64,000 nucleotides of DNA from Macrostomum hystrix. Lineage: Eukaryota > Animalia > Platyhelminthes. This document shows, piece by piece, positions 14,891-60,424 of this stretch (its first letter is position 1; each line of letters opens with the position of its first letter). The stretch is taken from the NCBI GenBank assembly GCA_950097015.1, contig CATNEN010000029.1, forward strand, positions 2,418,001 through 2,482,000, written 5' to 3'. The position numbers and the translations under genes were made by a program. Under the pieces are notes generated by a model. That model was not told where the DNA came from. It saw nothing but the letters and a program-made list of their open reading frames with translations, and ran no database searches.

Positions 14891-16187
14891 ATTAGGAGAG
14901 GGGTTTGAGAAGGCGATTTGAATGGCAGAATGGTACATGATTAATGGCAGAGGGGATTTGACTACAATGAAAAATAGGCGATTGTCATCAGAGGGACAGG
15001 GCTACATGAAAATGAAACAAAGACAGTGTTAGCGTTGCCAAATGACCCAGTCTCAAGCCAATGCTGTCCGCGTTCGCTTCTCTGTAACTGGCCCGGGCTG
15101 ACTTTCCACCCTAGTCTATTCTGCTGCGAGTCCCGCCCGCTTCACCCCTTGATCTCCGCCTTTGTGGGCCTAATCCCATGTTTCCCCTTCCCCACCACCC
15201 CACATCGTTCGCCTCATCCCCTGATTTAGCCTCTCTGCTCCCATTCTAACAGTCTCGTTATTTTCCCATATTATTCCTCTATTGCCCCATCTACGATGAG
15301 GCGAGGCTGCCCCCCCCACAAAAATCCCAGATGCGGACAGAGGGGAGGCAGCGGAGCGGGCGGGGATTTCCACCTGACTTGGCGGCTGAGACCAGCCAGC
15401 CTCCGGGGGCATCTGCGAGTGTCCCTCACAGCCAATGGCCACGCGCCCCCTCTGTCTCCTGGCATGCCCTGCATTCAGCCTCATCCTCTTCGCTTTAAGC
15501 CTCATCCGGAGCGATGCGGGAGGTGAGGCGGGGGGGCAACGCGTCGCATTAAAAACTAAAAAAGCTGACTGACTTCGCTCTGTCCTCTTCGCTACTCCCC
15601 AGACTCCGATCGCCGCTCAGGCCAGAAAAATCCCCCCTCCCTGCAAAAAAATCTCTGGTGATTCCCACCTGGCTGGGCTGAGCCCTACTGAGCTATTCAA
15701 TAGGCACTTTGTTACCGGGGCGGCATCATCATGGCTTCCGACGTGAGTGAATTTTTCTCTACTTGGGCTGTCAGAGACCGCTGCACTGTTAGGCTGTGAA
15801 GGGCGGAGTCCTGCGGGCCTGAGAACCTGACGGGACTCTTCGCACTGCGGTCAGGAGCTGCATCTGGGTGCATGCTGGGCAGTTCAAGGCTGTAATAAAA
15901 TCCCCAAATTGGGAGTATGTCCCATAATCAGATCTGAAGGACAGTGCTTTCACTATGTGAGTACCCTGCTCATGATGCTTAATATTTTATGACCCGCCCA
16001 TGCCATCATGTTCCCATAAGTCAGAAAGCAGCTGAATTTATTCCTTAAAGCCATCAAAATCCTATGAAAAAATTGTTTTTCAATCAGTCTTCCACTGAAC
16101 TGATTGCGTTCAGTGGAGCACATATTGCTCAATCAAAATTCTGTGTACTTTAAAGCAATTTTAACACTCAATTTGCAGCCATTTGAC

Positions 16188-19100
16188 ATGGCCATCTCAC
16201 GTGCGCAGCAGCAGCAGCACCAGTACGTAGCAGCCCCCACAGCGCCTGAAGATGAAGACAAAGAGCAGGTAGCTTTCTCGCAGCCTCAGCAGCCAGAGCA
16301 GCAGCAGCAGCAGCAGCAGCAGCGACGTGCTTCGAAGGGAGCTGGAGGTCACATGCCGCAGTTCAAGCAGCACGCGCTGAAGACTGTGAACTACTGCCTG
16401 CTATTCAGCCTGGTGGGCATGTCGGATGCCAGCATCGGGGCAGCTCTGCCGGGACTCACCTGTCTGGCCCGCACCTCAGAGCAGCGGGCCACTCTGCTGC
16501 TGTTCTTTCACGAGATCGCCGTCCTGCTCATGACCATCTTCTCTGGGTTTCTCAACAGAAAGTGAGCACGTGAAGTGGAGTGCCTGAGACAGGCATGCAG
16601 TGCAGAGGTGGAGTGACTGAGGCAGGCAGGCAGTGCAAATGTGGAGTGACTGAGGCAGGCAGGCAGTGCAGAGGTGGAGTGACTGTAAAGGTTATGTGCC
16701 TGTGTGAATGAGACGTATACTACTAGAGTGCTGAGCATCGGTCGCACCAATGAACACCAGAGGCAGAGAAAAGGGCAAAGAAGAAATGCCCCAAGTGTAC
16801 ACTATCGAATTGGGTGACAAGCAGTTCTTGCGGCTCGTATTTACAGTCAGCTATTAGATAAAGCCCTGAGCTCGCGGCCTAGTGCTTCTGGGTGAATCGA
16901 TCGGCCACCCCAGCACAAAAACTCGGCTGCCTGCTCTGACACGATAATCCCGCAGTGGGAAGAGATTAAAAGCGCTACCAAGGTCAAGATATCGCGCCGG
17001 GTGTTGGGAGGCCGCAGAATCCTACTCACATCGCTGAATGCCAGCTCGATAAAGTGAGGAATAAAGGACTCCCGCTTTTATCGCCACTTTTTATCCCCAC
17101 GATCAGCAGAGAATCCAAGAATGGCTGGCCAAGTGAAACCTATCGCCCCATCATCACAAACTACCGTGCCCGGCTTCTCACAACTGGGCCGGCTCTCTGT
17201 TCGTCTCGGAGGCTCAGATAGAGTGAAGGACTCGAGGACTCGACTGACTGGCATTGGGGGTGGGAAGCTTTCAGAGGCCGGTGAAAAAGCAATTTCCTGC
17301 GGCTGCAGAGTCTTGGCTGCTCTCTAACCCGGCCGGCTCGCATATTTCAAAAACTCTGCCTCCATCTCTCTCTCTCACTTTGCGGAAGAGCGGTTATGTG
17401 CTCTTGTGTGCTCAGTGCTCTGCTGGCTCCCCACACTCTCAATTTTCTCTTCTATTTTGGATTCTTTCCAACAAAAAGCCTCAGTGTGCTCATACTCAGG
17501 CCCAGCTGAGCCATTAAAATGAGTTCAGTCCTGGCATCTCTCTATGACTTCTCCCCATTATCCCATACCTTACGATGGAATGTGATATTTTCATCTGAAG
17601 CTGCCTTGAAGCTGGAAAGATTTGAAATTAGCCAAAAGTTAGACTATGGGCTGACGAACAAAGGCAAAAAGTAAGCTGCTACAGATATCAAAGAATAAGA
17701 TTTCTACCTGCGCCTGTGTTTTCGCTTGCAAAGTGCATCTGTTTGCATCACAACGATAGAAAGGAAGTGATAGCACCAGCTGTCGAAGCGTTAATAAATG
17801 CATACAATCGCCCTTCCTGTCAATTGATTGGCTACCAACCCCGTTTCTGTCACCTGATTGGCTACTACGACTAACCCCATTTCTGTCACCTGATTGGCTA
17901 CTAACCCCATTTCTGTCACCAGATTGGCTACCAACCCGATTAACTGACCAATCAGAATCCTTGATTGGCCCATCAGTCCTCATCGAGAAGTCTACTGACC
18001 AATCAGAATCGTGCATTTGAGAATGTCAATGCACCCTCTGAGTTCATATTTACGATTATATGTCAGTTTTACCATACTCTGCGAGCCCAGGCAGCAGTAA
18101 TGCAATTTGGAGACTTTAGAGTGAAAAAAGAAAGTGAAAGTTTTACATCGATGCAAGCGTAGAGAAGCCCGAATGCACCAGCGCTATTCTTGTCTGCCTG
18201 CTTTCGTGTGCCGATGCCTCAGACGCACGGGCGAAATAGAAAATAATCTAGACAGATAGAATGCGGATTAGGGTTTAGCGGAGCAGACAGACACACAGGC
18301 GGGGTACTCAGAATGAGTAGACTCAAGCTATAGAAACCTTTTTTGACTCTGCTCTGCTTTCCCATTTCCCTAATTGAGTTTTGTGAGGAGGGAGGCGTCT
18401 CGCTGCCCTGGCTTCGCCCCCCTCAACTGCGACCCCGCATGAAGGGCTTCCCAGTGGCAGAGACTGCGGGATAACTGCGAGACTGCTGTCCATAAGCCAC
18501 TGAGCAGCAGTGAGACCGCAGTCACGTACTCATCATCCATATAGTCTCCATTGTTTTTTACTATAGCGTTTTTTATCAGGCCAATGTCGGCGTAACATAG
18601 GTGATACTGCACACAATGCATAGGTAATACTGCACTCAGTGCGTAGGTGATACTGTACTCAGTGCATAGGTGATACTGCACACAATGTATAGGTAATACT
18701 GTACTCAGTGCGTAGGTGATACTGTACTCAGTGCATAGGTGATACTGCACACAATGCATAGGTAATACTGTACTCAGTGCGTAGGTGATACTGCACACAA
18801 TGCATAGGTAATACTGTACTCAGTGCGTAGGTGATACTGCACACAATGCGTAGGTGATACTGTACTCAGTGCATAGGTGATACTGCACACAATGCGTAGG
18901 TAATACTGCACTCAGTGCGTAGGTGATACTGCACACAATGCATAGGTGATACTGTACTCAGTGCGTAGGTAATATTGCACTCAGTGCGTAGGTGATACTG
19001 AACACAATGCATAGGTAATACTGCACTCAGTGCGTAGGTGATACTGCACACAATGCGTAGGTAATACTGCACTCAGTGCGTAGGTGATACTGCACACAAT

Positions 19101-22100
19101 GCGTAGGTGATACTGTACTCAGTGCGTAGGTAATATTGCACTCAGTGCGTAGGTGATACTGCACACAATGCATAGGTAATACTGTACTCAGTGCGTAGGT
19201 GATACTGTACTCAGTGCGTATGTGATACTGTACTCAGTGCGTATGTGATACTGTACTCAGTGCGTAGGTGATACTGTACTCAGTGCGTAGGTGATACTGT
19301 ACTCAGTGCGTAGGTGATACTGTACTCAGTGCATAGATGATACTGTACTCAGTGCATAGGTGATACTGTACTCAGTGCATAGATGATACTGTAATCAGTG
19401 CATAGGTGATACTGTACTCAGTGCAGTAGGTGATACTGTACTCAGTGCGTAGGTGATACTGTACTCAGTGCGTAGGTGATACTGTACTCAGTGCATAGAT
19501 AATACTGTACTCAGTGCATAGGTGATACTGCACTCAGTGCGTAGGTGATACTGCACTCAGTACATAGATGATACTGTAATCAGTACATAGATGATACTGC
19601 ACTCAGTACATAGATGATACTGTACACAGTACATAGATGATACTGTACTCAGTGCATAGATAATACTGTAATCAGTGCATAGATGATACTGTACTCAGTA
19701 CATAGATGATACTGTACTCAGTACATAGATGATACTGTAATCAGTACATAGATGATACTGTACACAGTACATAGATGATACTGTACTCAGTACATAGATG
19801 ATACTGTACACAGTACATAGATGATACTGTACTCAGTACATAGATGATACTGTACTCAGTGCATAGATGATACTGTACTCAGTACATAGATGATACTGTA
19901 ATCAGTACATAGATGATACTGTACTCAGTACATAGATGATACTGTACACAGTACATAGATGATACTGTACTCAGTGCGTAGGTGATACTGTACTCAGTGC
20001 ATAGGTGATACTGTACTCAGTGCGTAGGTGATACTGTACTCAGTGCATAGATAATACTGTAATCAGTGCATAGGTGATACTGTACTCAGTGCGTAGGTGA
20101 TACTGTACTCAGTGCATAGATAATACTGTAATCAGTGCGTAGGTGATACTGTACTCAGTGCGTATGTGATACTGTACTCAGTGCGTAGGTGATACTGTAC
20201 TCAGTGCGTAGGTGATACTGTACTCAGTGCGTATGTGATACTGTACTCAGTGCGTAGGTGATACTGCACTCAGTGCATAGATAATACTGTAATCAGTGCA
20301 TAGGTGATACTGCACTCAGTGCGTAGGTGATACTGCACTCAGTGCGTAGGTGATACTGCACACAATGCATAGGTAATACTGTACTCAGTGCATAGATAAT
20401 ACTGTAATCAGTGCATAGGTGATACTGTACTCAGTGAATATATGATACTGTATTTAGTGCATAGGTGATACTATACTCAGTACATAGGTGATACTGTACT
20501 TAGTGCATAGGTAATACTGTACTCATTGATTGAGTAATATATTAATGAATTCGAACGCAAATCGATTAGCACAGTACATACAAAAAACGAACTGCTAATT
20601 TTTACTTTTTTTCGTAGAATGTCGTCGAAAATCGAATGAAATCATATCACCTATGCACTGACATCTATAGTGCTTCATAATACAGGTGATACTGTACTCA
20701 GTGCATAGGTGATACTGCACTAATTGATTGAGTAATTTATTTCGATGAGCATGAGCACAGTCTATAGAAAAAACGGTAAATTTTATCTCCTTTCGGAGGA
20801 TGTCGTCGAAAATCGAATGAAATCATTTTGAAAGCGAAAACGGCCCTTTTAAGGACTGCCAGACTTTTGCTAGTTAAATGGATGACATAAAGCCATGTAA
20901 ATTTCGGGTCAAGCCAAGAACCTTGTCTGCTTACTAATCTGCGCACTAGGAACAACTTGAATTTCCTGCCCATGTGTTAGCAATTTCAAGTGCAGATCGA
21001 TTTCCCTTGTCTCTGCACCTGTCTGCAGGGTGCCAGCCAACATTGTGATGACCGCAGTCTCGGTGCTGGTGCCGGCTTGCTTCGTGCTGGTGACCTTCTG
21101 CGGCAGCCTGCCGAGCATGGCCTTCATATTCGGCCTGATGGGCCTGGCCGAGGGCTGCCTGGAGTTCTTCTGCAACACGCAGATGATCTTCCTCTACAGG
21201 CAAAACTCGGGCCCGTTCCTGCAGGCCATGTTCTTCAGCCAGAGCGTTGGTGCCCTGGTTTCCCCGCTGATCATCGGCAGCTTCATGTCTAAGCCGCTGT
21301 TTCGCCAGTGGAGCAATTGCTCCCTGCCAGAGGAGCTGGAGGCCGCGATATCGGCAGAGTCCCTCGGTGACATCATCCAGCGGGACCCGGCCCTCGGCGA
21401 GATGCTGTCCCGCGTGCGGTATCCGTTCTATGCCATCGCCGTCATTCAGGTGACGTCATCTGATTCAGGCAGCTGCGATCCTGCGACTTGACAGCCTGGG
21501 GTCTGGGAGCTGGATAGAATTGTTGTAGCTGAGAACTGGCTTGGACCTAGGTCAGCTGTGATTGGACAGGATAGTTTCATGAGTGGGGTAGAGCTGTTGT
21601 AGCTGAGAACTGGCTTGGACCTAGGTCAGCTGTGATTAGACCGGTCATGGGTGCGACAGGGTGAAAACGAATTAATTGTAGTCATCCACCTGTCATTCAC
21701 AGATCCCCATCATGATTTCAATGTTCTACCTGTCCTACAAGGAGGGCTGGACTCAGGAGGTCACACGTGGAGTGGAAGCTGAAGGTATAATTTACTTGGA
21801 TTGTAAATAGTTTTATTGCAAATCAGCATCCGTTGTTTCAAGAGTTTTATACTACAGCTCGTATAATAGGTTTAAAATATTTTTTTAATTTGACAGAAGA
21901 GTTCGAGGACAGACGCGAGGAGGGTCCGTCGGCTTACCTGGTGTTGGCTTTTGCATCAGCCTGCGCCTTTGCTCTTGACGGTCTCATGGTGAGGCTCGAC
22001 CACCCTTGCCTAAGATTATTAATTGTTACTCTCGTTTGCAAACTAAAAGTACGTATTGCTCAGGTGTAAAATAAGTACTACCCAGGCGTAAAGTACGTAC

Positions 22101-49774: not shown

Positions 49775-52700
49775 ATGGAAACAGAACCGCACCGAGATCA
49801 GCCAAGTCCATACCAGGCACAGGATGATGAGCACGGCAACTGGGGCGGTGGAAATAGCATCGTGAGTCGTATTCTCAGACGATGCCGTCCACTGAAGGAA
49901 CAGCAGCAGCAAAGTAACGAAGGCAGCAGTGGTATTCAAAGAATTTCCATACTTGAAGACGCTGTGAAGCCGACGATGGAGTCGTTAATCGGCTCGGAGG
50001 AGCGGGGGGAGCGTTTCAGCGATAACAATGTTAACAATGTTGATTGCATCGGATCGGGGGCGTGTGCCGCAAGCGAATCGAGCGAGAGCGACAATCTTGT
50101 CACTCAGAATAATGGTAAGTCAGCCTTCTTAATTGAGTTATGGGATCAGTCCATATTACAACCGATTTCCGTATGAAGTCAGTTCCCATTCGGAATATTC
50201 CGATATCTAGCCCCAGATTGTACCTAATCACCCAAGAAATCCCAACAACCCGCCATTTTCCGGCTCCAATGCGACAGAAGGCGTTAGGAATTCTCATCTC
50301 TCGAATATCTTGGAGTCGGCAATCGACAGCAATAAAGTAAAATCCCTCCTATATTTTCCTTGCTTTTTGCTTAGCACCAGAAGAGGACACTGAGAGGAAG
50401 ACCAACGCAGAGGGGTCTGCCAGCCAGAAGCAGCAGAGTGAGCAGAAATCTTCAAAAGGGAAGAAGACTCGCGAGCAGATCTTCTTGGCCAATGAGGCTG
50501 CCGCTAGAAAACGGGCCGAAAAGCACTGGACAGTGGATAATGAGGCCTACGATTTCAAGTTAGTTCAAATGCTAACGGAAGAGTCTGAATATTCTGATGG
50601 GGCAGAGTCAGAGACTGGGACACTGGTAGAAGGAGGGCGTAACGAATTCTGGGAAGAGTCAGAGACTGGGACACTGGTAGAAGGAGGGCGTAACGAATTC
50701 TGGGAAGAGTCAGAGACTGGAACACTGGTTGAAGGAGGGCGTGACGAATTCTGGGAAGAGTCAGAGACTGGGACACTGGTTGAAGGAGGGCGTGACGAAT
50801 TCTGGGAAGAGTCAGAGACTGGGACACTGGTTGAAGGAGGGCGTGACGAATTCTGGGAAGAGTCAGAGACTGGGACACTGGTTGAAGGAGGGCGTGACGA
50901 ATTCTGGGAAGAGTCAGAGACTGGGACACTGGTAGAAGGAGTGCCTGAAAAATCCTGGGATGAGTCAGAGACTGGGCAACTGGAAGAAGTACCTGATCGA
51001 TTACACGAGTTGGATGCTGAGATCGGTTCCAAATCCAAACTTTTATTACTCAACCTGCTAATTGCTGGGCTATAACTAATGTCTAGGCGCGTCCTGCTCC
51101 ACTACACAAACGTTGACAAGCGCATTAAGCCGAAGGACATGAAGTACGTAGTTGACCACCGTGAGAAATCGATTTGCGATCAATACGGCAAGGTGATGCG
51201 CACGGTGATCCGAGGCGCCATTCACCCGCTGATTGACAACGTTGTGAACGGCTTCTGTCAGCGCATGGGCATGTCCGAGGCGAAGAGGGTGCCAACGGTG
51301 GAGGAGCGAATGTTTCTGTGGTTTAACCGCGAGAAGGCTTTGAAGCTAAATGATGCGAATGGGTCCAAAAAAGCAGGTTGGAAATTTTTAATTTATCCTT
51401 GTAGCTTGCTGCGCGTAGATATTTTCGCCTATTAAAAAATTATTAATTACGAGCGTAAGAGCTTTGAACTGCATATCACTACCGATTCACACTGATTCGC
51501 GTTGTAAGTCTAGTTTTATGCGTACATACCAATGAGTGATCTCAGGTGTGCGGTGTGATGCCAAAAATGGTCTTCGATAACACCCAGATTCTAGTTTCAT
51601 TCACCTTATGAAAAAAACCGATTCCCAGGTGTACTTCGTCAACTTTATCACCTGGGACAACATGTTGACGGATCTCCAGAGCCTCAACTCGCGTCTATCG
51701 CACTGCAACATGCGCCTGGGCCAGATCTACCCGGACCACTACTGCTACGACGAAGAAAAGATTAAGGAAGTGTTTCACGCCAAGGTCAACGTCAAGTCTG
51801 ACACACCCATGCCAAAAATGCTCTTTGTTGAGAAGCAGTCAATATGCGAGCATGTGTTCGAGTCGCAAGACCTAAATAAGGCCTGCGAGGAAAAGGGCTG
51901 CCCTAATTTTGGCAAGAAAATGTGTCGCTGCTTCAGACTTGGTATCTTCATGCCGGAGACCATGGTGCTGGCTACGAAGACCCAGTTTGAGTCTGTGCTC
52001 AGGAACTTCGTTGGTAAGGCCGGTGAAGCTTAAAAAAAAAGTCACGGTAGATTTTGCCGAAATTATTTTCGATAGACTATCGAAAACAGAGAGACGCTCT
52101 GTTCAGTTCTTAGTTTGAAAACTCACAGACACATCCAGCCCGTTACCCAATCACCGCTCGTATCACCGCAGAGGACAGGTACATCAACCATCGCTGGCTG
52201 ATCCGCGCCTCCAATCTGAAGAGCGGCAACGGGGTACAGTTCATTGACTCCGCCGCCGAGCTAGAGACCTTCTTGCGCTACGACATTCGAAAAAGTGTGC
52301 GCGGTCAGTTCTACATCATGCAAAGGTAAGACAAAAAAGTTGTTTTATGAAATACGCTTGCTGCTGGTGGTTTCCTGTTTTGCAATTCAACCAGCGAACC
52401 CTCAAAGGACCCTCAGAGAACACTGTGGCTCAAAAATCCCGGGCCTTTCCCATGCGAGACGACTCGTTGAGACAGGAGGGGGATTCAGAAAAAAGGGCCA
52501 CTATGATGAGAGCTGTCCTGCCGGTAGCAGTAGTTTCACTGACTGATTTCTCTCAACAGGCCTGCATTTCAACAGTATAAGTACAGCTAATCTGGTTCAG
52601 TTCACCTTCTTGGAGGTATTGCATAAAAAAAAATAGTTTCTCAACTTTCTCAATGAAAAAAGGTAGATTAGACCTAGTTTAAAGATAACCGGAGCAGTCC

Positions 52701-54964
52701 GAAGCTCGCAACAGGCTCCCTGAGCTCGAAACCGCGGCGAGGCCACATTTATTTGTGGCGCAGCCGCGGAGAGAAGGCTGGGGGGGGCTTTCCATGCATA
52801 CAAAACTATAAACTTTTCGTTCTAAATTCGATTGCTTAACACCCTCTCACCTGTTGTCAGGTACCTCAAGAATCCCATGCTAATGGGAATGCGCAGATTC
52901 GACTGTCGCATGTTCCTGCTGATCTGCGTGCTGTCAGAACGTCGTGTTGTTGGATTCCTGCATCCGGGCTACATGCGCGTGGCCCAGCAAGACTTCGATC
53001 CGAAGAGTAAAGACCTTCGCTGTCATCTGACTTGGCCGTTTACCTGGGATCCGGAGTACAACAGGTAACTATTCATAACCTGAAAGTAATTTAAACGTTG
53101 AAAAAACGAAATCAAATGAATAATGTTAGCTCTTCGTACCCGGATATGCTAGTTCAAAGAACCCGGATATATTAGTTCAAAGAATGCGGATATACTAGTT
53201 CAAAGAATCAGGTATACTAGTTCAAAGAACCCGGATATGCTAGTTCAAAGAACTCGGATATACTAGTTCAAAGAACCCGGATATACTAGTTCAAAGAACC
53301 CGGATATACTAGTTCAAAGAACCCGGTTATACTAGTTCAAAGAACCCAGGTATACTAGTTCAAAGAACCCGGATATACTAGTTCAAAGAACCCGGATATA
53401 CTAGTTCAAAGAACCCGGTTATACTAGTTCAAAGAACCCAGGTATACTAGTTCAAAGAACCCGGATATACTAGTTCAAAGAACCCGGATATGCTAGTTCA
53501 AAGAACCCGGATATACTAGTTCAAAGAACCCGGATATACTAGTTCAAAGAACCCGGATATACTAGTTCAAAGAACCCAGGTATACTAGTTCAAAGAACCC
53601 GGATATACTAGTTCAAAGAACCCGGATATGCTAGTTCAAAGAACCCAGATATACTAGTTCAAAGAACCCAGATATACTAGTTCAAAGAGCCCGGATATGG
53701 TAGTTCAAAGAACCTGTGTATGGTGTTCAAAGAACCCGGATGTTGCATTATTATCTGAGTATGATGTCGCGGCACCAACTTTGATCAACCGCCTAAAAAC
53801 TATGTCGCATCTCACATCTTAAATATGAAATCTCCCTTCTTTATCTAAAATGGGAGAATCGCTTTGCTTTAGCCTGTCACAAAGACATGCTCAGAAAACT
53901 GGCATGAATGAAGATAAAAGTGTAAAAATAGGGGTTCGCCTCCACGTTGCGTCTTCGGACCGCCCTTCGGATAAGTCCGGTAAGTCAAAAGACTAGGGGT
54001 AAAACATGAAACATGACACTTAATTTCAGACTATGAATGCGGGAACGACTTAGCAGTGTGACATTAGCCCAGCCAATCATGTTATCAGCAAGAAAGCAGT
54101 TGATTTTCCATTCTAGGTACAAGGGCAAAAACCCTGAGAAGCTGCCAGATTATTGCCATGCATACTCCAGCGCGTGCACAAAGCTGGAGCTGCCAAAGCT
54201 CGACTACAAAACCTTCGACCAAGAATTGCTCGCCGGGAATCACTTTATCGCCAAGCTCAACTGCATCGTCCAGGAGATTGTGCGCAATATGGAGTCCATC
54301 ATTTACGACAAGCCCGGCACCTGGCAGTTGTTCGGCTTGGACTTGACGGTCGACAGCGACAAGAATCCTTGGCTGTACGATGTCATGACCTACCCAAGCG
54401 TCAATGAGCCGGACTTCTTTTCAGAGACTCAGAACAAAATACTGCCAGCCGTCTTTACAGAGGCTGTATGCATCGGCTTTGAGCTGAATCAGCGAGACTT
54501 TGCCACCAGATCGCGGATGGAATGGATGGACCTGCCGGATGTACCGTTTAACAAGCAAGGTGAGGTGTTTTGTGATAGAGGTGTATTTTTTTGCTTCTCG
54601 ATGTGCTTTCTGCAAAGTGTAAGATACGATCTATAATTTTACTATAAATTTTACTATATTCTCAAAACCAAATAACGCAGGCATCATCACAGCTCAGCAG
54701 AATTTCATCTGGATGTACAGCACCAGTCCTGAAAGACTGCTGAGCTACAAGGAGGTCAGGAAGATCCCTCGCCTGCACTGGTATCATAAGTGGCGCGTTG
54801 CGGAGGACTTCAACGACTATATTTTGTACCTGAAGAACTTCCGCTTAGATAGCATCGTACGCATGGAGGACAATAATATCTATGGTCGGAAGACATTCGA
54901 CAACTCGCCGATGTTCAAGGCGAAACAACAGTTGAAGAAATCTGGCAAAGAGCCGCCCCAATGA
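49775..54964 (+). CDS. Tubulin-tyrosine ligase-like (TTLL, TTLL10-like ATP-grasp) protein with degenerate active site
   Basis: Exons 49775-50114, 50375-50558, 51087-~51376, (unresolved 51377-51628), 51629-52013, 52172-52325, 52861-53064, 54117-54559, 54681-54964. TTL-domain motifs: 'QIYPDHY' (~FxPxTY), 'WLIRASNLKSGNGVQFI' (~WIxKPxxxxxGxGIxL), 'YIMQRYLKNPMLMGMRRFDCRMFLLI', 'HPGYMRVAQQDFDPKSKDLRCHLT', 'WQLFGLDLTVDSDKNPWLYDVMTYPS'. Confidence 0.82.
50605..50985 (+). repeat. 51-bp tandem repeat (17-codon acidic unit SETGTLVEGGRDEFWEE)
   Basis: About 7 copies of 'gagtcagagactgggacactggtagaaggagggcgtaacgaattctgggaa', inside the predicted TTLL intron 50559-51086. Confidence 0.95.
52690..52791 (+). 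mobile_element. tRNA-derived SINE copy (TTLL intron)
   Basis: 'gagctcgaaacc' (B-box-like), then 'gcgaggccacatttatttgtggcgcagccgcggagagaaggctggggggggctt', shared with the copy at 58146. Confidence 0.6.
53135..53745. repeat. 23-bp minisatellite (TTLL intron)
   Basis: Unit 'ctagttcaaagaacccggatata'. Confidence 0.96.
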
Positions 54965-56270: not shown

Positions 56271-56396
56271 TAGAGTAAAGATTTTTTAGATCGTGACCAT
56301 AACTAAGCATGTAAAACAACGATTTACGCAGTTAGAGAACGAATCTGTTGTCTCGCAGTCATTTGTAAATGAGTGAATCAGCGAAGCGCCATGCAG

Positions 56397-59300
56397 TCAG
56401 GCTAGGCAGTTCACATTATGCATGGAGAAGTAGTCTCCTCCACTGGGCGACTCTGGCGATACGGCCAAGCCACCGTCGCCGCCGCTCAAACCGACGTCGT
56501 CTCTGCCTACGCCGCCGCTGCCGTAGCTCAAGCCTGCAGGTTGCTGGCAAATCGCGGACTCGATGGCTGAGCTGACAGATGCTGCCTGCTGATGCAGCAG
56601 CTGATGCTGCTGCAGCTGCTGGCCCTGGTGGTGAAGATGATGCTGGTGATGGTGGTGGCTGAACTCGGGCACGGAGCCAGTGCTAGACAGATCCGACAGG
56701 TCGTCCGGCGATGCCGAGGCCGCGTGGCAGTGCAGACTGGCCGACTTCTGGTGCCCCGAAGCTGCTGCGCCACTCATCATAGCGTGAGCAGCTTCGTCTA
56801 GCTGCTGCTGTTGCTGCTGCTGCTGGGGCTGTTGAAGCTGCTGCTGCGGCGGCGGCTGCTGCTGCTGCTTCAATAGTGATCGTCGGTACTTGGCCCGCGC
56901 GTTTTGAAACCAAACCTAGCATTGGTTGGGGAATTGTGGCGGGATTTGGGGAATATATTTTTGTAGGCAGTAGACACGACTTTACTACTGCAAGTAGTAG
57001 CAATGACAACGTGGAAAACACGTGACTCTCAATTCTTGCAAAAATAGCTATCGGCCGATTTTAAGCAGAAAGTTAATTTTCGAGTTGGTTATTGTCAGTT
57101 TTTCTAAACCAAACTTAATTAATCGTGAACCATCGTGAGACAGCAGCCGGGCTAGCATTTTAGTAACCGACAGGTTGTCCTATCGATTTTTTCAGATATT
57201 TCTTTAATCCTTTAACAGGCTTTTTTACAAACAAAATACTGGATATTTGCGCTTTTTCTAGTAGGATTGTTTTTTTAAAGAACTTTATAAAGGCCTCTGA
57301 AATTAATTTAAAAAATTGACTTTGAAAATCAATTGAGCAAATCATCACATACTCAGATTATATCCCTAAAAAGGTTGTGTCCTTCATGCATTTCTTGCTT
57401 AATATATCGGTCGTCAACTATGTTGTCGCAAATAGAGAATATTTTGCTTCCTTTCTCTTTAGTAGCTGTTGAGTAGTAAGTTAGGAGTTTTTGTTTTGTT
57501 TGTATTCAAAGAGTCAAAACTGACCTGCAGGACTCTTTTGCTGAGTCCAGTCTTCTGGGCGAGCTGCTTCAGGTCTTTGCTGTCCGGATTGTGGTTGATG
57601 ATGAAGTAGCTCTTCATGGTGCGCAGCTGGTGGTGCTTGAAGCTGGTGCGGACTCGCTTCTGCCGCTGTCCCGGCGTACCAGACGATCCCCCGGCCGCCG
57701 ACGCGCCGCCGTCGCCGACTCCACTAGCACCGCTGCCTCCGCCTACGCCATCGCCGCCGCCGGCTCCGCCGCAACCGCTGCTGGCTGAGTTGGGCGAATG
57801 GCAGCAAGCGTCGCTGGCCATTTCAGAGCCTGTAGCGGGTCCCATAGAGATAAGATTAGCATGTTAAACTCTTCGTTCGGAGGACCGATTTCAATACAAG
57901 GCGTTTTTTCTTCAGAAGCTTCAGCGGTGATAATAATAATTGCAGGAGGGCAGCGGGCAATGGCACATCATTTGGTGACACTAGACCCGCAGCCAGCGAG
58001 GAGGCAATTCTGTCCATTTCGCTGACTCCAGAGCACACACGCACACAGACACCGTACGCAGGCACACGCTCACACAGGTGTGTACATCTGCCCTGACTTT
58101 CTCATTGTCAGGCAGTGCACACTCTCACTGTGCCTTGTGCACGAGAAGCCCCCAAGCCTTCTCTCCGCGGCTGCGCCCCAAAGAAATGTGGCCTCGCCAT
58201 CGAATCGAACTTAGGGCCGTGGTGCGAGAGGCAAACGCGTTAACCGCTCTGCCACCGACCCCCCTAGCTTCAGCGATAGTTTATGTTTGTCGATCTGACA
58301 ACGCAAACGTAGGCGCCTCTTTCTTGAAGTATTCAAAAAAGTCTGCAACAATTAATCAATTGTTTCGAAAAACTAAACTGACGCCCGAGGGTTGATTGTC
58401 CAAGTTTTGTTTGACTAAAGTGGCCACAGCCTGTCCCTGATGCAATTTCGGCCATCTTATAGTACCATGTCTAGCAGAAGCCCCATCCTGAGTCTGACCC
58501 TCGGGGTGGAGATGTCTGCAGGAGGTGAGGAGCCAGATGAGGCAGCCCTTGTGTCGGAATGGAAGCATGCTAATAGGCTGGCTCCTATACTCGTGTCCGA
58601 ACGCCTCATTAAGCAGAATCCCCGCCGAGCACGGACACCCGCTGATCCCTGCTGTCCTTTGGAAGCGATTGGGAGGCCAATTCAACCCAGCTCGAGTGGA
58701 GACTGGGAGACTTCTCTCCGCCATTTGTCCGATTCTGGATTCTTACACAATCTTTGAGTAAAGTGTATTTTTAGACCGCGTATTTTTAAAGAGGCCGAAT
58801 CGACAACATCGGTATTTATGTTTTGTCGCGTTTCTTTCTGTGGCACTTGCGACAGAGTCAGAAGTAATTGAAACAGAACGTCTAAGAACAGTTTGTCAGA
58901 AAAAGTTAAGATAGAAAAAGGTAAGCGAGAGAGAATCTGTTGAGTAGAGTGGAATTCCCGCAGTGTTTGCCCAGATGAAGCTGCGTTGGCCCTGTGAATT
59001 TTGGAATCTGGTGTCGAGAGCTGGGTGTGTGTGTCCGGGATGAGCTATGGGATTATTTACCCAACGGAGGCATCTCCCGCCATATTTGAACGGGGATTAT
59101 TTGAGCGGGCCAGGAGAGGGGAGGATGGGATCTTTACAAGCAGCCACTCAAAAAAGCTGAAATCGACACAGAATTGGCGGTTGGGCTGGCGGGGGGCAAG
59201 AACTGATGCAGAAGAAGGCAAAAAATGATTTGAAACTTTTCCCCATTGAATTCTTGCATCCTCATAAGATCCCCCATCCCAATGGGCCACCGTTTGCTTC

Positions 59301-60386
59301 CCCAAACTGTTTCCCAAGCAAGTGGCGGGACCAGAAACTGTGGCATCCCCTTCTCAATTGTCTTCCCCTATTCTGACTAACCGTCCCCTGTTGCGGAATC
59401 CCCATATATTCTTCCTCTTCTTTTACTAAAACTTCTCTTCTTCTGATGCCTTGTTCTTAAAAAAATCAGCAAGCCCATTGAATTCAGGCGGTGGGAAATT
59501 TTGCAGACAGTTGAAGATTGTCGGCCCAGCCTTGTCGCCCGTGTGGAACAGTTTTCTAGCGCGAATTCAGTTTGCTTTGGGAGAAATCATTTTGAATTCC
59601 AGGCATACAAGCCAATAATTTTCCTGCCAGATGATGTCGAAAGATGTTCGGGAAATAGCTTAGGCGTTATCAGATGCGGCCGAGTGTCACCTGTCTCTCT
59701 GCTGAATATCAAACAGATTTTATCACCTCTCAGAAGGAGTCAGGTAAGGTTCAGTTTGCTCACCGAGCTGCTCTAGCGGGTCGCCGCCAACTCCAAACAC
59801 GCCGGACACGAAGCCCAAGTCCATCGCGTCACTGGACAGCGCCGACGCCAGAGTCACGGTCGTCGTGGCTGCCGCTGACGACGCGATCGTCACGAGCTCC
59901 TCCTTCACAACGCCGCTATCAAAGCTGCAAGCTATCTGCTGATGCAGGTGATGCTGCTGGACAATGCCCAGCTCCTCCTGATGATGTAGAGCAGTTGGCA
60001 GCTGGGTCTGCGGTGGCACGTCGGCCGACTTTTTGGCCGAAGTCTTTCGCGGCCGGCCTTTGCCACCGCGAGCCTGCTTGCCGCCCGCGGTGTCGACTTT
60101 AGTTGTCGAAATTTCTACCTCCGCCGAGGAGTCGCCCAGAATGAACTGCGGCGGCGGTGGGGGATGCGCCTGCACCAGCTGCTGATGCTGAAGGTGAAAC
60201 CGGCAGAAGACGGCGCCGCCGACGCTCAAGCCGAACTCGTCGCCAGGTGAGAAGCGGCGCTCGCAGGCCGGCCAGTGGCAGGTGAAGCAGGCCAGGTGGA
60301 AGTGATGCTCTCGAGCCTTCATCACTAGATCGGCCGGGTTGAGGCTGAGGCCACAGCGGCTGCAGGACTGGCGCGCGCTGAAGAGG
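56397..60386 (-). CDS. LHX2/9: LIM-homeobox protein Lhx2/9 (apterous), 5'-partial (LIM2 + homeodomain exons)
   Basis: Minus-strand exons 60386-59764, 57829-57525, 56915-56397 (TGA). LIM2: 'CSRCGLSLNPADLVMKAREHHFHLACFTCHWPACERRFSPGDEFGLSVGGAVFCRFH'. Homeodomain: 'RQKRVRTSFKHHQLRTMKSYFIINHNPDSKDLKQLAQKTGLSKRVLQ|VWFQNARAKYRR', near-identical to the Lhx2/9/apterous homeodomain, with an intron between LQ and VWFQN. Confidence 0.95.
58146..58264 (-). mobile_element. tRNA-derived SINE, most complete copy (Lhx intron)
   Basis: The reverse complement reads 'ggggtcggTGGCAGAGCGGttaacgcg...ctaaGTTCGATTCgatggcgaggccacatttctttggggcgcagccgcggagagaaggcttgggggctt'. It has Pol III A and B boxes plus a 3' core shared by two other copies, and it does not fold into a proper cloverleaf. 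Confidence 0.7.
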
Positions 60387-60424
60387 CTGCGAGATGGCGG
60401 GTCAAAAATTGCACCATTGAACAG

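Follow-up and report, generated by a model that had tools for sequence, protein, structure and literature searches.

To our knowledge, pseudoenzymes of the TTL (tubulin tyrosine ligase) family are known only through TTLL12, and the way in which that protein acts is still debated. This report describes another candidate. It lies in a 64,000-nucleotide stretch of the genome of the flatworm Macrostomum hystrix (assembly GCA_950097015.1, contig CATNEN010000029.1, positions 2,418,001 to 2,482,000 of the forward strand), which is called the window here and on which the features of the gene are numbered. The gene is on the plus strand at 49775-54964, has eight exons and encodes a protein of about 760 residues that belongs to the TTL family (PF03133). 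Active-site residues are replaced in it, the replacements are shared across species, and the gene is conserved under purifying selection. It probably encodes a selected, conserved pseudo-ligase that is no longer catalytic.

The roles of the active-site residues have been described for TTL and TTLL6. In TTL, two Mg ions are coordinated by D318 and E331, and the carboxylate of the acceptor glutamate is bound by R202 (PMC3563685). Tyrosination is abolished in the E331Q mutant, a result cited in PMC7293026. In TTLL6, D346 and E359 bind two Mg ions, K174 (equivalent to TTL K150) binds the alpha-phosphate, N264 (TTL N242) binds the beta-phosphate and K125 of the N-domain binds the gamma-phosphate, while R219 and R241 (TTL R202 and R222) bind the phosphate that is transferred. 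The activity of K125A, K174A and N264A, and of mutants of D346, E359, R219 and R241, is at background (bioRxiv 10.1101/2020.06.07.139295).

The gene is the M. hystrix orthologue of M. lignano BOX15_Mlig012602. Its structure was obtained by reading splice sites and by tblastn of the M. lignano protein BOX15_Mlig012602g1 (PAA75181.1, called P0013 here) onto the window. A further orthologue, P0019, has 800 residues and an uninterrupted coding sequence on two Logan contigs, each some 3 kb long, of the SRA runs SRR30276812 and SRR30276804. Since the M. hystrix and M. lignano genes have seven introns, this coding sequence must be the spliced mRNA of a third Macrostomum-like species; the transcript evidence comes from this other species. 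M. lignano also has a second, related group of paralogues (P0006 and P0014-P0016; BOX15_Mlig009102) at about 50-55% identity, with the motif WLHDVMTYP. The whole subgroup is called DVM after its motif D/E-V-M-T-Y-P. A search of the M. hystrix assembly found no counterpart of the second DVM group; either M. hystrix has lost this group or it arose on the lineage leading to M. lignano. The window gene is without a close paralogue in the M. hystrix genome.

That the gene carries a TTL-domain scaffold, as the initial annotation had recognized, is borne out by searches with PF03133. Taken by itself, exon 6 reaches 27.2 bits, where the cut-off is 20.1; exon 7 reaches 18.5 bits, and the full-length relatives reach 47 (P0013), 53.1 (P0016) and 64.5 (P0019). 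The only Pfam domains in the orthologues are TTL and ATPgrasp_YheCD.

Residues were numbered after TTL by a HMMER alignment of P0019 to the TTL chains in the PDB. In this alignment, WLIR-A-S corresponds to W147-I-A-K150-S-S, RRFDCR to R197-K198-F-D200-I-R202, the arginine of Y-M-R to R222, CHLT-W to C238-H-L-T241-N242, FGLD to F-G-F-D318 and L-Y-D-V-M to L329-I-E331-V-N333. The four motifs that had been quoted in the initial annotation (WLIRAS, RRFD, HLTW and WLYDVMTYP) are all present on the plus strand as they were given. RWLIRAS is found at 52192-52212, with arginine at the position of K150; RRFDCR at 52892-52909, with K198 changed to arginine and D200 and R202 kept; CHLTW at 53021-53035, with tryptophan at N242; LFGLDL at 54328-54345, with D318 kept; and PWLYDVMTYP at 54367-54396, with the changes E331D and N333M. 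R222 is kept in HPGYMR. Further upstream, MLTDLQSL at 51662-51685 stands where canonical relatives have the lysines of a KDK motif, which here reads TDL, so that the N-domain lysine is replaced by leucine.

A table of these sites covers the window exons, treated as fragments, three DVM relatives, eight canonical members of their clade and 13 other TTL domains of M. hystrix. Among the 21 comparison proteins, which come from M. hystrix and M. lignano, every one with a residue at the site has the N-domain lysine (in an R-K-D motif), K150, K198, D200, R202, R222, D318, E331 and N333. The window gene reads L, R, R, D, R, R, D, D and M at the same nine sites; Q183 and Y185 are also kept. The set expected of a catalytic enzyme (N-domain lysine, K150, K198, D318, E331, N333, R202 and R222) is thus found as L, R, R, D, D, M, R and R, and the gene is a member of the TTL family by descent and fold and not one of its canonical enzymes.

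The replacements are common to the subgroup. In each of the four DVM members, leucine stands at the N-domain lysine, arginine at K150 and K198, aspartate or glutamate at 331 and methionine at N333, and the strings TDL, WLIRA, RRFD and (D/E)VMTYP are found in all DVM relatives, across three species and the second paralogue group. When the orthologues were checked for the canonical E-x-N motif, methionine was found at N333 in every one. E331 is retained in the third species only, where the other four replacements are the same as in the window gene. The position of N242 in the HLTN motif holds W, M or L in the DVM members, and it already varies (G, N, A, P or D) in the canonical sister genes; because of this variability, the change from HLTN to HLTW is weak evidence. 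The initial annotation had described the protein as lacking the ATP-grasp metal ligands. This is clear for N333M, but it overstates the case as a whole, as D318 is kept and E331D is a conservative change.

Over the exons of the TTL core (3-8), the M. lignano orthologues P0013 and P0005 have 70-84% identity per exon with the window gene, and identity is lower in exons 1 and 2. The proteins nearest to the locus in public collections are from M. lignano, at 74-79% identity, and a HMMER search of 1.84 billion representative proteins with exon 7 gave 75% identity to P0005. This search returned only eight matches at E ≤ 1e-3. One of them, Dreissena P0007, was rejected as spurious, consisting of 16 short stretches in a repeat protein. 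Word-index protein searches returned four matches for a canonical paralogue, two for P0013 and only itself for P0005, and added no further species. Synonymous and nonsynonymous divergence was estimated by the Nei-Gojobori method (NG86) from 575 aligned codons in exons 3-8, with the counts taken for each exon and then added up. Between M. hystrix and M. lignano, dN is 0.131 and dS 1.12, which gives an omega (dN/dS) of 0.116; omega is 0.093 between M. hystrix and the third species and 0.100 between M. lignano and the third species, with pairwise dS of 1.1-2.0 among the three. On the M. hystrix branch itself, by three-taxon decomposition, dN is 0.093, dS 0.92 and omega about 0.10. Intron positions are conserved between the M. 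hystrix gene and its orthologues, and the gene downstream of it is collinear with the M. lignano region downstream of the orthologue (L011, about 16030-20330), so that synteny is kept. With omega near 0.1 and a collinear neighbor, the gene is a positional orthologue under strong purifying selection and not a decaying copy.

A maximum-likelihood tree (IQ-TREE, LG+C20, 24 rows, 314 columns) groups the three DVM proteins as a clade with support of 100/100. This clade is nested, with support of 100/99, among three canonical lineages that each have M. hystrix and M. lignano members: P0001/P0003 with L004/L002, P0012/P0021 with L023/L024, and P0008. The DVM stem (1.09) is not longer than the stems of the sister lineages (0.87-1.21). 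In the same tree, with loci labelled by their best solved structure, the clade that contains DVM falls on the side of the M. hystrix loci whose best solved match is TTLL3. No relatives of the wider TTL-like clade outside Macrostomum were found among the searches run.

M. hystrix and M. lignano share a private TTL-like expansion with canonical catalytic residues, represented by the loci L002 (contig C38, 7706771-7710046), L004 (contig C29, 4849285-4852545), L006 (contig C33, 60826-63942), L023 and L024. In its members, long inserts separate the central domain from the C domain, and a QNFxWxYST motif is shared at the C-terminus.

The AF2 model of the M. lignano orthologue has a pTM of 0.70, with pLDDT of 80-90 over most of the core, and in it the three-domain TTL/ATP-grasp fold is predicted to be complete. 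A profile of the clade matched TTL best among solved structures (7e-22), followed by TTLL7 (5e-20), TTLL6 (2e-16) and TTLL3 (9e-14). Foldseek searches with the model placed TTLL11, TTLL6 and TTL in a tie (E about 1e-12, probability 1.00). The initial annotation had judged the spacing of the motifs to be most like that of TTLL10. A shape search of the ESM Atlas put a TTLL10 cluster in the first row, with a TM score of 0.51 against 0.50 for TTLL7 and TTLL11, but the sequence searches put TTL first, and the sequence, Foldseek and Atlas comparisons gave no signal specific to any one TTLL subfamily.

A three-way DNA alignment shows a single base in exon 3 of the M. hystrix gene (51087-51376) that neither the M. 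lignano genome nor the third-species transcript has; it falls within the AAA of CTAAATG, at about 51349-51351. With the conserved splice sites, the eight exons add up to 2284 nt, or 3n+1, and the orthologous junction between exons 3 and 4 (51376 to 51629) leads to a stop 46 codons into exon 4. The 27 nt that follow the insertion read MMRMGPKKQ in the old frame, compared with MNRMGPKKQ in M. lignano, with four synonymous third-position differences and one changed codon. Because this pattern fits translation in the old frame for nearly the whole divergence, the insertion is either very recent or a residual error of long-read assembly. Four combinations of GT and AG sites restore the frame. In the simplest of these, the conserved donor is joined to an AG that lies 41 nt upstream of the conserved acceptor, so that exon 4 would start at 51588 and 14 residues would be added, in a loop that is also variable in length in the second paralogue group. 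A rescuing AG of this kind is expected by chance about half the time, and its presence is thus not evidence of rescue. The extra base may be an error of the assembly or a lesion of very recent date, or its effect may be offset by an alternative splice site. The published M. hystrix assembly, of about 220 Mb in 42 contigs, was built from PacBio reads with canu and polished with Arrow and Pilon (PMC10468722). If the extra A is an assembly error, other genes in it may carry similar residual indels.

Since the replacements are fixed throughout, in the three species as well as the second paralogue group, and since omega is about 0.1, the gene would be a selected pseudoenzyme or a strongly altered enzyme rather than a decaying one. 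A pseudoenzyme was what the initial annotation had proposed, and we consider it the probable reading: invariant nucleotide and metal sites have been replaced and the replaced state is conserved, which suggests a loss of activity. Several points weigh against it. The two changes from K to R and the one from E to D, three of the five in all, are conservative, and E331 is still present in one orthologue, so residual or altered catalysis is possible. The TDL motif was equated with the N-domain lysine by motif alignment alone, the HMMER alignments to solved structures beginning further downstream; the AF2 model was built from a shallow alignment of 14 rows; and the extra base breaks the frame if the orthologous sites are used (donor CAG/gt after 51376, acceptor cag/GTG before 51629). 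The conservative changes would suit a still-active ATP-grasp ligase with a remodelled site, in which arginines stand in for the phosphate-binding lysines and aspartate for glutamate as a Mg ligand, while the pocket (N333M, N242W/M/L) receives a new donor or acceptor. Charge is preserved by K150R, K198R and E331D, the residues D318, R202, R222, Q183 and Y185 are kept, and strict conservation of the replaced positions within the DVM group is what would be expected of a working site, as is the low omega. However, neither the leucine that replaces the N-domain lysine nor the methionine that replaces the metal-site asparagine has a side chain able to bind phosphate or Mg, none of the 21 compared TTL-domain proteins tolerates any of these changes, and the equivalent single alanine mutants of TTLL6 (K125, K174 and N264) are at background (bioRxiv 10.1101/2020.06.07.139295). 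A remodelled enzyme is therefore unlikely.

A different kind of loss is raised by the extra base. The M. hystrix copy may have been disabled very recently, if the genome truly has the 1-nt insertion and splicing follows the conserved sites, in which case translation would end at the stop in exon 4. The disagreement with both other species, the total exon length of 3n+1 and the premature stop at the orthologous junction all fit such a lesion, and the second DVM paralogue of M. lignano is also missing from M. hystrix, whether through loss or because it was never there. Yet the 2.3 kb of coding sequence contain no further stops or frameshifts, the gene's own branch has an omega of about 0.10, the old-frame pattern persists after the insertion, an artefact of the PacBio/canu assembly is possible (PMC10468722), and the frame can be restored in four ways; we hold recent disablement to be quite improbable. 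That the locus is an old decaying pseudogene, or a set of chance open reading frames (ORFs) resembling a TTL domain, is suggested only by its weak Pfam scores per exon, which are the weakest of the 69 exon-level TTL matches in the M. hystrix genome. Identity of 70-84% in exons 3-8 at a dS above 1, an omega of about 0.1, and conserved intron positions and synteny effectively refute it, the orthologue moreover having a spliced transcript, and the chance that it is correct is very small indeed.

If the gene does encode a pseudo-ligase, ATP-dependent ligation of amino acids would no longer take place at a useful rate. The old active-site cleft may instead dock the acidic C-terminal tail of tubulin or of some other protein. 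D318, R202 and R222 are kept, and the two arginines are those that bind the acceptor carboxylate and the phosphate being transferred in TTL and TTLL6. The cleft could perhaps also bind a nucleotide, since two lysines became arginines and not random residues. Such a protein would act as a binder, competitor or regulator beside its catalytically canonical paralogues. The initial annotation had suggested that a non-catalytic protein of this kind could work in cilia or sperm.

In a broader and distinctly speculative scenario, to which we give little weight, the DVM proteins would read or regulate acidic protein tails without catalysis. They would have arisen within the genus-restricted TTL-like expansion and co-evolved with the unusual microtubule systems of Macrostomum, among them sperm that are not known to have an axoneme. 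With D318, R202 and R222 kept and arginines in place of the lysines, the old cleft would hold tubulin tails and control whether the active paralogues can reach them.

The initial annotation had placed the gene at 52172-54559. Both ends are exact splice boundaries, 52172 being preceded by an acceptor AG and 54559 followed by a donor GT, but the interval spans only exons 5-7 of the eight. The extension of the gene beyond these exons, the loss of the N-domain lysine and the frame-breaking extra base upstream had been missed. GT-AG sites are found at every intron. Exon 1 (49775-50114) begins with the ATG at 49775, encodes a low-complexity N-terminus with a tblastn match to P0013 residues 1-109, and ends at the donor ATG/gtaagt with consistent phase. 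Exon 2 (50375-50558), between the acceptor ttag/CA and the donor TTCAA/gttagt, encodes the conserved segment IFLANEAAARKRAEK and has 58% identity by tblastn to P0013 residues 142-200. The TTL N-domain starts in exon 3, which carries the 1-nt insertion and has 75% identity to P0013 by tblastn. A start of the gene at an ATG at 51079 was ruled out, as the orthologues show two more upstream exons and an acceptor at 51086/51087.

Exon 4 (51629-52013) contains the TDL motif, and its acceptor is orthologous to that of M. lignano and of the third-species transcript. Exon 5 (52172-52325) contains RWLIRAS and a glycine-rich loop, SGNG. Exon 6 (52861-53064) contains (Q)RYLKNP in addition to RRFDCR, HPGYMR and CHLTW, and exon 7 (54117-54559) encodes the C-domain of the ATP-grasp fold. 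Exon 8 (54681-54964) encodes a C-terminal extension, QNFIWMYST..., that is common to the canonical sister genes, with 83% identity by tblastn to P0013 residues 689-783, and ends in a TGA stop codon at 54962-54964. Aligned with P0019, the in-frame cores of exons 4-8 follow one another with no gap but the single split codon at each of the junctions 4/5, 5/6, 6/7 and 7/8. Since P0019 is the protein of an orthologous spliced mRNA, these junctions are validated.

Intron 2 (50559-51086) contains a minisatellite of 51 nt repeated 7.6 times at 50600-50989 according to TRF. It is free of stops and in frame with exon 2 (ORF 50485-51075), and it translates as ESETGTLVEGGR(N/D)EFWE, seven times. The segment is absent from the orthologues to which it was compared. 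Intron 6 (53065-54116) is largely filled by a 23-nt tandem repeat of 26 copies at 53138-53741, with 92% matches by TRF. The neighbor gene downstream lies at about 56393-60403 on the minus strand and has a polyQ-rich N-terminus (ORF 56397-56873).

What is new here is an independent, genus-restricted clade with a loss that is different from, and more extensive than, that of TTLL12, and with canonical sisters in the same genomes. The pattern of the loss is specific: the phosphate-binding lysines and the metal-site asparagine are gone, and the acceptor-binding arginines are kept. The canonical sister genes serve as natural controls, and the close relative M. lignano is amenable to RNAi and transgenesis, which makes this a tractable system for the function of a dead TTL domain. 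A literature search found no paper on the M. lignano gene identifiers, nor any that links Macrostomum to TTL or TTLL. The M. lignano orthologues have been deposited as hypothetical proteins, with automatic names of TTLL12 (UniRef, P0013) or TTLL9, and current annotation labels the private TTL-like expansion of Macrostomum only in these ways.

Among the described systems, TTLL12, a proposed pseudoenzyme, offers a precedent. It has a conserved TTL-fold domain, has no detectable tyrosination, glutamylation or glycylation activity and is missing some of the ATP/Mg motifs (PMC3520985). Its TTL domain is needed for binding to the tubulin dimer (PMC10883266), a model for a TTL domain that binds tubulin without catalysis. 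However, the WICK lysine and the E-V-N metal motif, both changed in DVM, are intact in TTLL12 (PMC3520985). At its N-terminus TTLL12 carries a SET-like domain, and its range extends from protists to plants, while relatives of DVM were found only in Macrostomum. The automatic TTLL12 identity was rejected, because Pfam finds no SET domain in the orthologues and the residues that TTLL12 keeps, the WICK lysine and the asparagine of EVN, are those that are replaced. The loss in DVM is independent of that in TTLL12 and took place in a different clade.

TTL itself (PDB 4IHJ, 3TIG and others) is the best match by sequence among solved structures, with an E-value of 2e-9 for one orthologue and 7e-22 for the clade profile. 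The motifs WIAKSS, CHLT, RKFDIR and FGFD...WLIEVN of TTL correspond to WLIRAS, CHLT, RRFDCR and FGLD...WLYDVM of the window gene. However, TTL is a single-domain protein of about 380 residues in which K150, K198, E331 and N333 are intact, whereas the window protein is about twice as long, has N- and C-terminal extensions and carries an insert between the central and C domains. The glutamylases TTLL6, TTLL7 and TTLL11 and the glycylases TTLL3 and TTLL10 have the same ATP-grasp TTL core; catalytic residues that are essential in TTLL6 are replaced in the window gene. Yeast Pby1 is a TTL-like ATP-grasp protein that binds Dcp2 through its putative active site, a function unrelated to tubulin ligation (PMC7293026), and it is thus a further precedent for protein binding in the former cleft of a TTL fold. 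Pby1 keeps all of its catalytic residues, which are substituted in the window gene; the window gene shows no evidence of a link to mRNA decapping.

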